Of a stretch of DNA of 64,000 nucleotides, positions 41,502-48,003 are shown in pieces. How positions within the stretch are numbered: the first letter of the stretch is position 1; every line of letters begins with the position of its first letter. The notes beneath the pieces are model-generated. The model was not told the origin of the DNA and did no database searches. It was given only the letters and a program-made list of their open reading frames with translations. A program made the position numbers and the translations under genes. The stretch is from Epiperipatus broadwayi (taxonomy: Eukaryota; Animalia; Onychophora), in NCBI GenBank assembly GCA_028023455.1, contig JAQFVV010000009.1, forward strand, positions 6,820,001 to 6,884,000, in the 5' to 3' direction.

Positions 41502-41902
41502 CAGGGGTCCCCAACCCTATGCCCGTATTTTACGTGTGTCCCGCCGCTATCCGAACACGATAAAAAATTATTTATCTGATACAAATAAATTTAATTTTTA
41601 AAATTTCTTATAAATTATTGTATTATATTGTAATCAAATTGTAGGGCATACTATACTTTTACAGCATAAAAATATAAACATTAATTATATGTTAATTATA
41701 TTATTAATTAATTATATTAAATTTTATTTTTGAAATAAATATTTCTTTGTACATTATGTGTATTATTAACAATATCCAACTATAAATTTACATTGAAAAA
41801 ATAAATGATGCCCACCATCTGGTTGAAAAAACTAAATGGTGCCCGCTACCTGGCCAGTATTATAGAATGTGCTCTTAAGTGCAAAAAGGTTGGGGACCCC
41901 TG
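41502..41902. mobile_element. 401-bp hAT-Charlie-type MITE
   Basis: 15-bp perfect TIRs CAGGGGTCCCCAACC / GGTTGGGGACCCCTG. 8-bp TSD GTCTAGAG (41494-41501) / GCCTAGAG (41903-41910) fits the NTCTAGAN Charlie target. Confidence 0.92.
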
Positions 41903-42293
41903 GCCTAGAGATTATCCAATAAAAAATAATATTTCTACAGTGTAATTTTCATTACATCATTGTCATGCAAGGTAGGGACTAGTTTCTATCCGCTTTTCAT
42001 AAACATATGACCAAAGATGTGAAAAAGATCTACGATAGCCAAGATGTATATTTATTGTATTTTCCATGAATTTGTACATTGGTTTTTATGGTGTTAAAAA
42101 AATTACACATTTATAAATGAAAATAATTTTTTCATATAACCTACAAATGAATAATTATTCTCTTCTATATATTATTATCCATTGATAAAAAATCAAGTCA
42201 TATGACCTAATTTTAATAAAGCTCCTATTTACAAATGTTATATATAGAGTAAGTTAACAACAAACTCTTATGAAGCTTCAAAAATACCCTCAA

Positions 42294-42333
42294 CCTCAGA
42301 CCGCGGTTTCTGCCTCTAGCGTCATCAGTGAGG
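42294..42333 (-). ncRNA. Type I hammerhead ribozyme, family B copy 1 (core intact)
   Basis: CCTCA-CTGATGA-CGCTAGAGGCA-GAAAC-CGCG-GTC-TGAGG: perfect 5-bp stem I, 8-nt palindrome ACCGCGGT in stem III, GUC cleavage triplet (cut after 42299 on the minus strand). Confidence 0.88.
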
Positions 42334-42662
42334 TGCTAGGGAATAAAAATACTAGAACTAGTCCAGCATTTTATCAATGCCTAACTATTGAGAAGAAAAT
42401 CTGAAACTTTCAGACATTTAAATGTCCAAAAATCCAGCTATCTAACTCAAATAGCAGTATGGGACTGAAGTAAGTTCAGATACACCATATATTAATAGCT
42501 CTAGCAATATAAAATCGCCAAAGCATTAATAGCAAAAAACTAAAATTAAATTGATAAAAAATCAAGTCATATGACCTAATTTTAATAAAGCTCCTATTTA
42601 CAAATGTTATATATAGAGTAAGTTAAAAACAAACTCTTATGAAGCTTCAAAAATACCCTCAA

Positions 42663-42702
42663 CCTCAGACCGCGGTTTCTGCCTCTAGCGTCATCAGTGA
42701 GG
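42663..42702 (-). ncRNA. Type I hammerhead ribozyme, family B copy 2 (core intact)
   Basis: Identical to copy 1 and 369 nt upstream on the same strand (cut after 42668). Confidence 0.88.
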
Positions 42703-42918
42703 TGCTAGGGAATAAAAATACTAGAACTAGTCCAGCATTTTATCAATGCCTAACTATTGATATATGGTGTATCTGAACTTACTTCAGTCCCATACTGCTA
42801 TTTGAGTTAGATAGCTGGATTTTTGGACATTTAAATGTCTGAAAGTTTCAGATTTTCTTCTCAATAGTTAGGCATTGATAAAATGCTGGACTAGTTCTAG
42901 TATTTTTATTCCCTAGCA

Positions 42919-42958
42919 CCTCACTGATGACACTAGAGGCAGAAACCGCGGTCTGAGG
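42919..42958 (+). ncRNA. Type I hammerhead ribozyme, family B copy 3 (core intact, stem II weakened)
   Basis: CCTCA-CTGATGA-CACTAGAGGCA-GAAACCGCGGTC-TGAGG. One CpG-type G>A change in stem II. Confidence 0.8.
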
Positions 42959-45512
42959 TTGAGGGTATTTTTGAAGCTTCATAAGAGTTTGTTTTTAACT
43001 TACTCTATATATAATATTATTATCCATAAAAGTGTTATTTCAAATAATGATTTTAATCCTACTTGGAAAAATTAAATTTAACTTTATTATTATATTTCTT
43101 ACATTAATGCATGTGATAGTGAATATAGATTTGACAAACATGAAATATTTTCATTTATTGATCATCTTCCCCCCCTGTGCCCATTTAAATTATTGAAATT
43201 ATTTTCTTCTCTAGTTTATCATATGGAGGTTGTATATATATTTTTATATATTTTTTATAATGTCATAATAATTTAATTGGGAATCAACAATATAAAATAA
43301 TTTAAACATTTAATCTTGATTGTAACAAGAACATAATATTTTAAAGTCAGCAGAATTAAGCAATCAAATTATTACTTTGTACTATGTTGAAAATTTTATT
43401 TATCCCATTCATATCATTATTAGGAATTGATGATAATGTGATGGCATTTAATAATAATAAACAGTACTTAAAATCACAATTTTGAAAACTAGCTTGTTGA
43501 ATTACAATATTTTACATTATTTAATCAAAGAGTTCAACATACATATCTACACTATATTATACTGGATTAACATAGTTTTCATTTAACATTGTGTTTCTGT
43601 AGGATTTAGTACTTGGGTTAAAAAGGATTTTATTTTTTTGTCATAGTAGTTGACCTTTATATATGAATTTTTGCCTTGATATTTTATTAATATATTATGA
43701 TCTTTGTTTATGTCAGAGTTTTATTGTGCAATTTTTTTTTTAAATTTATATTTATATTAAAATATTTTCATTATTATTTTTTATAATTACTCAGTTTCTC
43801 ATTATAACACTAAACGTTTTTCATTAAATTTGTCCCAATTCTATTATGATGAATAGTTGATGAATTAAATTTCATAAAGTCTTTTTTTGGAATAATTTTT
43901 AAAAGAATTAGCATATGTATATTAAAAGGATTAGAATATATTGTATACAGAATATATATATACTTACTAATATTATAATGAAATTACAATAATTATTCTA
44001 TAATTAACATTTGATTTTATTTACTAATATTAATATGGAATAAAAATGCAATTGCTAATGATATTCCAACATAGAAAAAGTTAATGTATTGTGTTTATTG
44101 ACTGTTTGCAAGGAAGGAGGTGCTTCTATTACAAATATTGTGTTTTATGTAAGTTTGCATTTTTTTTTAATATAACAGTAATATATTGTCTTTATATCTA
44201 TTTCTGCATCATTTTTTACAGAATTAAATTTTGCTTAGATATTTGAAACTAAATTTCCATAAAAATCTGGAATTGATTATAATGTAAAATAATTATAGAG
44301 ATCTTTAACTATATTGAATTAGCAATGTTTATTGTAAAAAAAATACTCATAAATTATGATTTGAAAATTTCTTTGTCATTAATGATATGTGCTGTACAGA
44401 GATACTTTATTGTTCACAATCACTTATTTTTGGAAATACACTGTGAATCTTGTATTTAACAATAATGTGTGTATATTTGCATAAGAATAAACACTAAAAT
44501 TGGTAATTGAGACTGCAGTGCAATAAAATTATAACACCTATTTAAACAGGCAAAACTCTCCATACAGTAGTGCCACTCAGTGCCAACCCAAGTAATCAAT
44601 GGATGCCAGAAGGCTTAAAAAAAAGCTCACTGACAAAGGCCATAAGCCAGAAACTAGTCTGGGGATTTTGGATGAGCTAGGTATTCCATAAGGATTTTAT
44701 GCACAAGCCTTCTGGCATCCATTGATTATTCTGGTTGGCACTGAGTGGCACTACTGTATGGAGAGTTGCCTGTTTTAATAACTAAGGTGATAGCAGAAGA
44801 AATAGTGATTATGTGATGTTTAGTGGTTTAACACCAATCCTGCCCAATAGGGTACTGGTGGCTATGGTTGTCAAAGAGCAAAAGACACCAAAATGTATGG
44901 GTACTGAACTGGGTTCAGACCATATGACTATAAGCTATTGAGTTTAGATTGAAAATATTGTGTTTTTCAATATTATTCTCATAGTTTTGTTGTTAAGTAG
45001 AGATAAAAAGTGGCTGCTGAAGGGTTGCATTAGATCCTAAGATCTAGGTGCAGTGCTCTCAGATCCAAAGCTCCTCACTGACAAAGGCCACAAGCCAGAA
45101 ACTAGTCTGGGGATATTGGATGAGTAGGCACTAGATAGGGATTTTATGCACAAGTCTTCTGAAATCCATTGATTACTCTGGTTGGCCCTGAGTGGCACTG
45201 CTGTATGGAGAGTTGCTTGTTTTAATAATGTGCTAGCATAAGAAATAGTGATCATGTGATGTTTAGTTGTCTAACACCAATCCTGCCTAATAGGATAGTG
45301 GTGGCTATGGTTGTTAAAGAGCCAAAGACACCAAAATGTATGGGTGCGGTGCTGGGCTCAGATCCATTGAGTATATAAGCTATTGACATTAGATTGAAAA
45401 TATTGTGTTTTCAATTTCTCATAGTTTTGTAGTTAAGTAGAGATAAAAAGTGGCTGCTAGAGGATTGCATTAGATCCTAAGATCTAGGTGCAGTGCTTTC
45501 AGATCCAAAGCT

Positions 45513-45552
45513 CCTCACTGATGAAGACCACAAGCCTGAAACTAGTCTAGGG
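45513..45552 (+). ncRNA. Type I hammerhead ribozyme, family A (core intact, single mismatches in stems I and II)
   Basis: CCTCA-CTGATGA-AGACCACAAGCCT-GAAAC-TA-GTC-TAGGG; palindromic ACTAGT stem III. Confidence 0.7.
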
Positions 45553-46371
45553 ATATTGGATGAGTAGGCACTAGATAGGAATTTTATGCACAAGCCTTCT
45601 GGCATCCATTGATTACCCTGTTTAGTATTAAGTAGCACTACTGTATGGAGATCTCGTTTTGCCTGTTTCAATAACAGTAATGTGGTAGCATAAGAAATAA
45701 TGGCATGTGATGTTTAGTGGTTAACACCAATCCTGCCTAATAGGATAGTGGTGACTATAGTTGTTAAAGAGCCAAAGACACCAAAATGTATGGGTACTGA
45801 ACTGGGTTCAGATCGAAATGACTGTATAAGCTGTTGCATTAGATCCTAAGGTCTAGGTGCAGTGCTCTCAGACCCAAAGCTTCTCACTGACAAAGGCCAC
45901 AAGCCAGAAACTAGTCTGGGGATATTGGATGAGTAAGCATTAGATAAGGATTTTATGCACAAGCCTTCTGGGATCCATTGATTACTCTGGTTAGCACTGA
46001 GTGGCACTACTGTATGGAGAGTTTTGCCTGTTTTAATAACACTACTGTATGGAGAGTTGCCTGTTTTAATAACAGTAATGAGCTAGCATAAGTTATAGTG
46101 ATCATGTGATGTTTAGTGGTTTAACATCAATCCTGCCTAATACGATAGTGGCGGCTATGGTTGTTAAAGAGCCAAAGGCACTAAAATGTATGGGTATTGA
46201 ACTGGGTTCAGACCCATATGACTATGTAAGCTATTGAGCTTAGATTGAAAATATTATTGTGTTTTCAAATTTTATTCTCATAGTTTTGTAGTTAAGTAGA
46301 GATAAAAAGTGGCTGCTGGATGCTTGCATTAGATTCTAAGATCTAGGTGCAGTGCTCTCAGATCCAAAGCT

Positions 46372-46411
46372 CCTCACTGACGAAGGCCACAAGCCAGAAA
46401 CTAGTCTCGAT
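46372..46411 (+). ncRNA. Type I hammerhead ribozyme, family A (core intact, 3' arm of stem I damaged)
   Basis: CCTCA-CTGACGA-AGGCCACAAGCCA-GAAACTAGTC-TCGAT. Sister motifs at 44625, 45073 and 45882 have CTGACAA; the one at 46832 has ATGACGA. Confidence 0.6.
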
Positions 46412-48003
46412 ATTGGATGAGTAAGCACTAGATAAGGATTTTATGCACAAGCCTTCTGGCATCCATTGATTACTCTGGTTATCGCTGTGTGGCACTACTG
46501 TATGGAGAGTTTTGCCTGTTTTAATAACACTATTGTATGGAGAGTTGCCTGTTTTAATAACAGTAATGTGCTAGCATAAGTTATAGTGATCATGTGATGT
46601 TTAGTGGATTAACACCAATCCTGCCTAATACGATAGTGGTGGCTATGGTTGTTAAAGAGCAAAAGGCACTAAAATGTATGACTAGATAAGCTGTTGAGCT
46701 TAGATTGAAAATATTATTGTGTTTTCAAATTTTATTCTCATAGTTTTGTAGTTAAGTAGAGATAAAAAGTGGCTGCTGGAGGGTTGCATTATATTCTAAG
46801 ATCTAGATGCAGTGCTCTCAGATCCAAAGCTCCTCAATGACGAAGGCCACAAGCCTGAAACTAGTCTAGGGATATTGGATGAGTAGGCACTAGATAGCGA
46901 TTTTATGCGCAAGCCTTCCAGCATCCATTGATTACTCTGGTTGGCACTGAGTGGCTCTACTGTATGGTGAGTTTTGTCTCTTTTAATAACAGTAATGTGC
47001 TAGCATAAGAAATAGTCGTCATGTGATGTTTAGTGGTTTAACACCTATTTAATTTATTAGTTGATATGTGCAGTAAATATAAAACTGACAGTGTGGCCAT
47101 TTAAATTTTTTGAATTATTAAAGAAACTGAACAGAGCAAACTTCTAATCTTTATAATCTTGTAATTGAAGCTAATATTATAATGTGATTGTTCAAATGGT
47201 AAATGGACTAGTATCATGAGTATTATTATATGTTTTAACTGTTTTTTTGTTTGTCTGTCTGTGACATCTTGCAACTCAATTTTCATCCTTCCCAAGTTCC
47301 AATAGTTGAAATTTTACATACATATGTATTCCTTATGATAGTACATTTTTAAAGAGTTTGCAAGCATTTTTAACAACAATAGAAAATTAGTGAAAAAGTG
47401 CCATTTTTAATTTTATATGGGCTCTAGTATTTTTTGTGGTATTGCCATCTAGCAACATTATTATAGTAAGAAGAAATAATAGCAAAAAAAAAAGAGGAAA
47501 AAAATCATTAAAACAGAATAATATTATTCACCATTCTACATTGCAAAGTTACAAAAACTGGAAATAAATTAAGAGAAAAAATAATAACTGTAACATGAAT
47601 TTTTTAATAAAGCCAACTTATGCTATGGTTTTCTCAGCTTAGACAATTACAAAGAATACTTTACAAAAAAAATTACATATCCTATATTATTTGTAAAATT
47701 ATACACTTTGTTGGAACTTCATTACATATCATTAAATGTAGCTGAATATATCTTAAATGGTTGCCAGGTAACCTAGAATTAAAAAGATCTCACTCTAAGT
47801 TTATAAACTATGAGATTTTTGATCCTTTAAATTGAACTAATTTTTGTTGATTTTCCTTATGTGAACAAAAGCTTTTATATTTGCTTATTTAATAAATCTA
47901 TTTAAAAAATTATTTTGGCATTAAAAAATAATTTTAAATTTGTCAATAAATTTTTATTTTCCAGTTTTAAAAAAGTTATAAAATGAAATAATATTATATA
48001 TAT

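Follow-up and report, generated by a model that had tools for sequence, protein, structure and literature searches.

A young 369-nt hammerhead-bearing repeat family of Epiperipatus broadwayi with a Penelope-like insertion layout

The 64,000-nt window of the Epiperipatus broadwayi genome analysed here (contig JAQFVV010000009.1, positions 6,820,001 to 6,884,000) carries at 42183-43013 an 831-bp insertion built from a 369-nt unit with a hammerhead ribozyme motif. This insertion is probably (we put the chance at about three in four) one copy of a young non-coding family of 369-nt units that belongs to the class of animal non-LTR (long terminal repeat) retrozymes, or non-autonomous Penelope-like elements (PLEs), and is copied by Penelope-like machinery. 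The family, here called family B, is a young, high-copy, non-coding and recently mobile retroelement family, new within this known class. The inverted copy in the insertion is part of a fixed layout of two arms with a tail at one end only, which points to Penelope-like integration, an aspect missed in a preliminary description of the window.

A repeat search placed a perfect 14-bp target-site duplication (TSD), ATATTATTATCCAT, exactly at both edges of the insertion (Table 1). Between them lie 1.57 tandem copies of the unit and a 253-nt inverted partial copy. The direct repeat was recovered at a spacing of 369 nt (42181-42391 versus 42550-42760), and the inverted repeat spans 265 nt with 98% complementarity (42234-42498 versus 42754-43018). 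The copies have hardly diverged from each other: a single difference in 209 positions separates unit 1 from the partial unit 2, and the inverted copy departs from unit 1 at 4 of 265 positions, one of the four lying within the TSD. Both arms carry the same two subfamily-diagnostic variants, at unit positions 198 and 212 (position 1 being the first base after the predicted ribozyme cut); apart from these, the 831 bp contain three or four private changes. The 369-nt period was absent from the Tandem Repeats Finder output, probably because there are fewer than two full copies; the general repeat search did report it.

Searching the 5.6-Gb assembly (18,588 contigs) with the unit gave at least 931 candidate copies, and the full-length matches listed were 93-100% identical to it, mostly 97-99%. 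The exact 30-nt ribozyme core occurred 2,397 times, spread over the contigs listed, versus 0 for a reversed control, and exact cores recurred genome-wide at a spacing of 369-370 bp. We sampled 30 loci, which are the best matches and therefore bias the identities upward. Their 69 non-redundant full units had a mean pairwise identity of 98.4% and differed from their own consensus at 1.1% of sites, and the exact 40-nt motif was present in 49 of the 69 (71%). Arms at these loci reached six to nine or more consecutive 369-nt units with no open reading frame (ORF) between them, and no ORF-bearing segment was found within the arms of the 30 loci. Long pure arrays of at least nine units were present on small contigs (L005 and L013-L015). 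Among the contigs of four low-coverage sequencing runs of uncertain kind, family B sequence was found in two differently labelled organisms.

Fifteen independent insertions each had a TSD of their own, 7-19 bp long (mostly 10-15 bp) and mostly AT-rich. Two of them sat in (TA)n microsatellites, and a bias towards insertion into microsatellites has been described for PLEs (PMC8557442). Because independent loci carry different TSDs, family B is mobile. The repeat architecture of the preliminary description, a 369-nt repeat present about 1.6 times plus an inverted copy within a perfect 14-bp TSD, was recovered in full, and the interval that it gave between the two predicted minus-strand cut sites is exactly 369 nt. 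Its view of a recently active, protein-free element agrees with units that are about 98-99% identical, the lack of an ORF and the distinct TSDs at 15 loci. The genome-wide check of copy number and identity that it proposed yielded the candidates and exact cores given above as well as TSD-flanked copies. A lack of other copies with TSDs, which it had named as counter-evidence, is therefore not what the genome presents.

An insertion layout shared with an autonomous Penelope-like element

Every complete family B insertion had two oppositely oriented arms, each with its sense 3' end at the outside. In all 15 complete insertions one outer end lay at unit position 60-73 and the other at 117-130, a pattern that independent end types would give with a chance of about 3e-5. 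The tail, about 54 nt long and present at one end only, was on the longer arm in 13 of the 15. At both outer ends the TSD overlapped the element by 1-8 nt, microhomology of the kind that annealing of the target DNA end to the template would be expected to leave. The genome-wide list of exact cores showed the same head-to-head layout: where clustered cores differed in strand, minus copies preceded plus copies.

The arms met at variable, non-symmetric unit positions (277 versus 170 for the window insertion), and the inner junction at other loci showed either a 1-8 nt overlap or 4-11 nt of filler. Two separately primed and later joined copies therefore fit these junctions better than a snap-back hairpin does. 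Synthesis of the inverted arm by snap-back was ruled out for the window insertion, as its arms meet at different unit positions.

Autonomous PLEs are present in the same genome. A search for the GIY-YIG domain gave more than 10,000 candidates, some of them inside open frames of 870-901 aa. One set of loci (L043, L044, L046, L048, L049, L051 and L052) makes up PLE-1, apparently an intact, young autonomous Penelope-like family. In one example (L043:1101-7418; G000:C12394:20944300-20950617), two 901-aa ORFs lie in tandem with a period of 3,135 bp. RVT_1 and then a C-terminal GIY-YIG both scored over the Pfam cut-offs when the domains were scanned separately, and the scan of the whole 901-aa ORF returned no match, probably because of compositional bias. 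The region between the ORFs contains a hammerhead-like motif with U3-A8 core covariation (UUGAAAA ... GAAACGUU), a core variant described for schistosome PLEs (PMC4209133).

The PLE-1 insertions at L046, L048, L049, L051 and L052 likewise had two inverted arms with 3' ends outward. Measured from the predicted cut of PLE-1's own motif, the short end fell at 85-95 nt and the tail end at 140-145 nt, with a one-sided tail of about 50-55 nt. Craig et al. (2021, PMC8557442) describe as hallmarks of PLEs partial tandem copies, a neighbouring inverted copy that is truncated at its 5' end, and a tail of 30-40 bp at one end only. Since the layout of family B matches both PLE-1 and these hallmarks, family B carries a Penelope-like integration signature.

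We considered whether the reverse transcriptase might recognise the tail through a conserved hairpin and rejected this: the family B tail forms an 11-bp hairpin with a z-score of -1.1, and the PLE-1 tail has no stable fold. A stretch of family B, '...TTTTATCAATTTAA', resembles '...TTTTATCCATTTAA' after the PLE-1 stop codon; it does not lie at the PLE-1 terminus, and we did not rely on it.

Two relatives of the unit were seen among the sampled loci. At L026:1986-2693 the two innermost units belong to a mosaic subfamily with about 86% overall identity, in which positions of about 170-369, including the ribozyme, are near-identical to family B and positions 1-170 have strongly diverged. Their sequences suggest modular exchange or template switching between subfamilies. 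An older relative (L007:340-485; G000:C12411:12381998-12382143) is 78% identical to unit positions 5-112 and stops at the same terminus as the tail. Its candidate copies number at least 2,106, with 91-95% identity, so the module that follows the ribozyme on the 3' side is common to a larger, older family.

Table 1. Parts of the family B insertion, in window coordinates
Feature	Positions	Strand	Remarks
Left TSD copy	42169-42182	.	ATATTATTATCCAT; perfect direct repeat; last 2 nt overlap the element end (microhomology)
Arm 1, 1.57 tandem 369-nt units	42183-42760	-	ribozyme (sense) strand is minus; rows of unit 1-118, 1-369 and 277-369
Arm 1 sense 3' end	42183	-	faces outward; unit position about 116-118
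One-sided tail	42183-42234	-	unit positions about 65-116; at this insertion end only
Hammerhead motif 1	42294-42333	-	predicted cut between 42299 and 42298
Layout of hammerhead motif 1		-	CCUCA / CUGAUGA / C-GCUAGAGGC-A / GAAA / CCGCGG / UC, cut, UGAGG
Hammerhead motif 2	42663-42702	-	identical to motif 1; predicted cut between 42668 and 42667
Predicted 369-nt monomer RNA	42299-42667	-	interval between the two minus-strand cut sites
Central arm junction	42754-42760	.	7 nt common to both arms (microhomology); in locus L001 the arm rows end and start at 2078 and 2072
Arm 2, inverted, 5'-truncated partial unit (0.69 unit)	42761-43013	+	unit 170-369, then 1-60
Hammerhead motif 3	42919-42958	+	G-to-A in stem II at 42932 (GACGC to GACAC), a CpG-type change
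Arm 2 sense 3' end	43013	+	faces outward; short site, without tail
Right TSD copy	43014-43027	.	first 5 nt match the unit's next bases (microhomology)

The hammerhead motif and its predicted fold

The pattern CTGATGA-N-GAAAC-N-GTC matched six places in the window versus 0.00 expected from shuffles. Three of the six lie in the insertion (minus strand 42299-42328 and 42668-42697, plus strand 42924-42953), and all three of these motifs have the core boxes CUGAUGA, GAAA and GUC. Read in the sense direction, the motif runs ACCUCA, CUGAUGA, C, GCUAGAGGC, A, GAAA, CCGCGG, UC, cut, UGAGGU. Its ends, ACCUCA and UGAGGU, pair as an open stem I of 6 bp. Helix III (A15.1...U16.1) consists of ACCGCGGU, an 8-nt perfect palindrome that cannot close on itself and pairs between two copies. 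Cofolding of two 51-nt segments predicted a double hammerhead at -30.3 kcal/mol versus 2 x -12.9 for the separate monomers, with helices III and I intermolecular.

Variation within family B is too low for a covariation test, and related families were compared instead. In five or more families helix III is palindromic throughout (ACCGCGGU, ACUAGU, ACCAUGGU, AUGCAU and AUCAUGAU), stem II takes the forms GC/GC, GGC/GCC, AGC/GCU and UGC/GCA with the flanks C...A, A...A, U...A and G...U, and the innermost pair of stem I is A-U or U-A. Stem I of related families reads UCCUCA/UGGGGA and ACCUCU/AGGGGU, which includes the compensated change from A-U to U-A. The fixed core together with these compensating stem changes supports a constrained fold. 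Old hammerhead-like copies showed CpG decay of their palindromes, for example from CCGG to CCAG.

The 369-nt sense monomer as a whole was also predicted to be highly structured, with a fold of -101.6 kcal/mol (z -5.2; 0 of 100 shuffles as stable) versus -63.6 kcal/mol for the antisense strand (z -2.2). Such a difference between the strands agrees with a structured sense RNA, which has been reported for retrozymes (PMC7229834). In the genome, a loose minimal-hammerhead pattern had 186,799 matches versus 10,995 for the reversed control, an approximately 17-fold over-representation, and these matches belong to several families that differ in their palindromic helix III. With an excess of about 175,000 hammerhead-like motifs, the window insertion is a routine finding for the annotation of this genome.

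A copying model and its alternatives

In the copying route that we propose, a tandem copy would be transcribed on the ribozyme strand, and the hammerheads of neighbouring units would pair through the palindromic helix III into a double hammerhead that cuts after GUC and so releases 369-nt monomers. By analogy with other retrozymes, for which this has been shown (PMC7229834), the monomers may be circularised by a host RNA ligase. The reverse transcriptase/GIY-YIG nuclease of an autonomous PLE would then nick AT-rich DNA in a staggered manner, and each nick would prime complementary DNA (cDNA), with multimeric or circular RNA as the template and two favoured starting points, about 64 and about 118 nt beyond the ribozyme site. 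Finally, the two cDNAs would be joined in the middle. Arms longer than one unit require that the template be multimeric or circular.

The same route might apply more widely. It is possible, as a tentative generalisation, that the retrozyme reveals the rule behind the tandem and inverted insertions of PLEs and their tail, namely two cDNAs, one per staggered nick, started on a multimeric or circular RNA at two fixed sites about 54 nt apart and joined by microhomology. If this were true, family B, whose short, near-identical insertions number well over a thousand, would offer a natural minimal substrate for working out and reconstituting Penelope-like integration and could test whether circular RNA is the template.

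Several observations weigh against family B being a retrozyme copied by Penelope-like machinery. No convincing sequence similarity of family B to PLE-1 was found. BLAST of the unit against 22 loci with Penelope-like elements, out of more than 10,000 GIY-YIG candidates, returned only AT-rich, low-complexity similarity, with matches of about 60% identity to PLE-1 and none to the other loci examined. No empty allele of the insertion site was found in the assembly, where the right flank is unique and the left flank begins within a different repeat. The ends of the insertion lie away from the ribozyme cut site, and a cleaved linear monomer is therefore not simply copied from its own 3' end. At L004, L010 and L016, units within a single arm differ at subfamily-diagnostic sites. 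Rolling-circle copying of a single monomeric circle does not predict such differences and is thus unsupported as the only route; multimeric array transcripts or template switching must contribute.

The ribozyme itself adds to these points. Stem II has only 2-3 bp (GC/GC and a possible U-G pair) and is bordered by a 5' C and a 3' A, whereas in the minimal Penelope-type consensus a G10.1-C11.1 pair closes the stem and an extra base occurs 5' of it but not 3' (PMC4209133). The C...A flanks are either a C-A 10.1/11.1 mismatch or one extra base per side. In family A, a hammerhead family with an older array further along the window, the flanks are A...A, U...A or A...U, and these positions therefore behave like an often-mismatched pair. 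Published minimal hammerheads of the Penelope type cleave poorly in vitro (PMC4209133). The Infernal search suggested in the preliminary description yielded no Rfam hammerhead, either at gathering score in the whole window or at E<=10 in 42000-43200, where the only matches at that threshold were chance snoRNA/sRNA hits with E>2. The Rfam miss carries little weight because it is expected for motifs without a helix III hairpin. The claim of two intact ribozymes applies to the motif only: the core boxes, stem I and the perfectly palindromic helix III are in place, and the stem II flanks are off consensus. Transcription, cleavage and circularisation are predicted steps.

Several of these points would suit a Penelope-mobilised element whose motif does not cleave and serves for recognition by the reverse transcriptase or for palindrome dimerisation, or is a relic; in that case an uncleaved multimeric transcript, and not a 369-nt circle, would act as the template. 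The non-canonical flanks and very short stem II, the missing Rfam match, the low in vitro activity of minimal hammerheads, termini unrelated to the cut site and heterogeneous units within single arms all agree with this, as does the family A array, which has mutated cores (CTGACAA) and is still a normal array. We consider it unlikely, given that the core boxes are invariant in several families while the stems compensate and helix III stays palindromic. CpG decay was also lower in the motif (6%) than elsewhere in the unit (16%), in a small sample of five CpGs, and related retrozymes of mussel, coral and axolotl do yield cleaved and circular RNAs (PMC7229834). Rather less probable still is that the 369-nt unit is the terminal pseudo-LTR of an autonomous PLE and that the insertions are extremely 5'-truncated copies of it. 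PLEs are indeed heavily 5'-truncated and bear minimal hammerheads in their terminal repeats (PMC8557442, PMC4209133), and the loci compared here were 22 among more than 10,000 GIY-YIG candidates. This explanation sits poorly with ORF-free arms of up to six to nine or more consecutive units, with the genome-wide 369-370 bp spacing of exact cores and with the absence of an ORF-bearing segment from the arms of the 30 loci; the coding element repeats in tandem at full length, 3,135 bp for PLE-1.

We regard as highly improbable a satellite or other repeat propagated at the DNA level, such as a foldback-type DNA transposon or a repeat spread by reintegrated extrachromosomal DNA circles, with a fortuitous hammerhead-like motif. 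The long pure arrays on small contigs might be read in this way, the inverted arms are superficially foldback-like, and the RNA stage of family B is deduced from its sequence and predicted folds. Against this, TSD length is variable and microhomology is present at both ends; the ends are systematically non-identical and so are not terminal inverted repeats; and the asymmetric inner junction is not that of a hairpin. The layout is also identical to that of PLE-1, which encodes a reverse transcriptase, and the approximately 17-fold excess of the motif over the control argues against a chance resemblance.

Relation to known elements, and other repeats of the window

Animal retrozymes are thought to be mobilised by PLEs, and the published support found here consists of genome co-occurrence and similarity to PLE terminal repeats. 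The present data add a different type of evidence, in that a protein-free hammerhead element and an autonomous PLE of the same genome share one highly distinctive insertion layout, in which the arms are paired and inverted, a tail of about 50-55 nt is present at one end only and both ends show microhomology. Family B resembles the metazoan non-LTR retrozymes (Cervera and de la Pena 2020, PMC7229834; Li, Clavereau and Pollet 2026 preprint, 10.64898/2026.07.22.740005) in its AT-rich non-coding tandem units (170-400 nt in that class), in the type-I hammerhead on one strand of each unit (one motif per 369-nt unit here), in TSDs longer than 4 bp, in coexistence with autonomous PLEs and in a sense RNA predicted to be highly self-paired. 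It differs in its motif, which is of the minimal Penelope type without loop 1 or a helix III hairpin and presumably acts only as a dimer, whereas the invertebrate retrozymes of PMC7229834 have a canonical type-I motif with loop-loop contacts. Cleaved and circular RNAs are predictions for family B. A term search of PMC7229834 and 10.64898/2026.07.22.740005 found no mention of the twin-arm layout with a one-sided tail.

With EN+ (endonuclease-bearing) PLEs and their pseudo-LTRs (PMC8557442, PMC4209133), family B shares partial tandems, an inverted 5'-truncated neighbour copy, a tail at one end, AT-rich or microsatellite targets and a minimal hammerhead in the repeat with palindromic 15.2-16.2 positions. 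In contrast to them it has no ORF and a unit of only 369 nt, its tail is about 54 nt versus the published 30-40 bp, its stem II is flanked by C...A where theirs has a 5'-only extra base followed by G10.1-C11.1, and it has no detectable similarity to PLE-1, the one intact autonomous family examined. The satellite-2 hammerheads of newt and axolotl, as presented in the passages of PMC7229834 and PMC4209133 that cite them, have units of about 330-350 nt and a weak helix III that does not close within one motif, so that two tandem motifs must pair before efficient cleavage is expected. In the same accounts the amphibian helices I and II are canonical and have loops, unlike the loop-free motif of family B with its 8-nt palindromic helix III. 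The LTR retrozymes of plants (PMC4918200) are also non-autonomous, and their RNA is cut by flanking hammerheads and circularised, as predicted for family B. However, their type III hammerheads, LTRs, primer binding site, polypurine tract, 4-bp TSDs and Gypsy helpers have no counterpart in family B.

Being young, short and present in thousands of copies, family B is convenient for testing whether minimal hammerheads with non-canonical features are able to cleave as dimers, whether the reverse transcriptase uses circular RNA as its template, and how the PLE nuclease and reverse transcriptase make tandem and inverted insertions.

Other repeats lie close to the insertion. The first approximately 120 nt of the left flank (41935-42055) are part of a different dispersed repeat, for which there were 2,240 candidate places at 75-94% identity; some of its copies form adjacent inverted pairs. 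The segment 41502-41902 is bounded by a perfect 15-bp inverted repeat (CAGGGGTCCCCAACC / GGTTGGGGACCCCTG) and showed very high contig depth in the four low-coverage runs, with many contigs diverging at 41902; it is probably a high-copy repeat resembling a miniature inverted-repeat transposable element (MITE) or a short interspersed nuclear element (SINE). The family A array occupies 44539-47048, with units of about 440-490 nt whose cores are mostly mutated (CTGACAA or CTGACGA for CTGATGA). At its left edge, a 78-nt inverted fragment (44539-44616) repeats the inverted-copy layout of family B in an older insertion.

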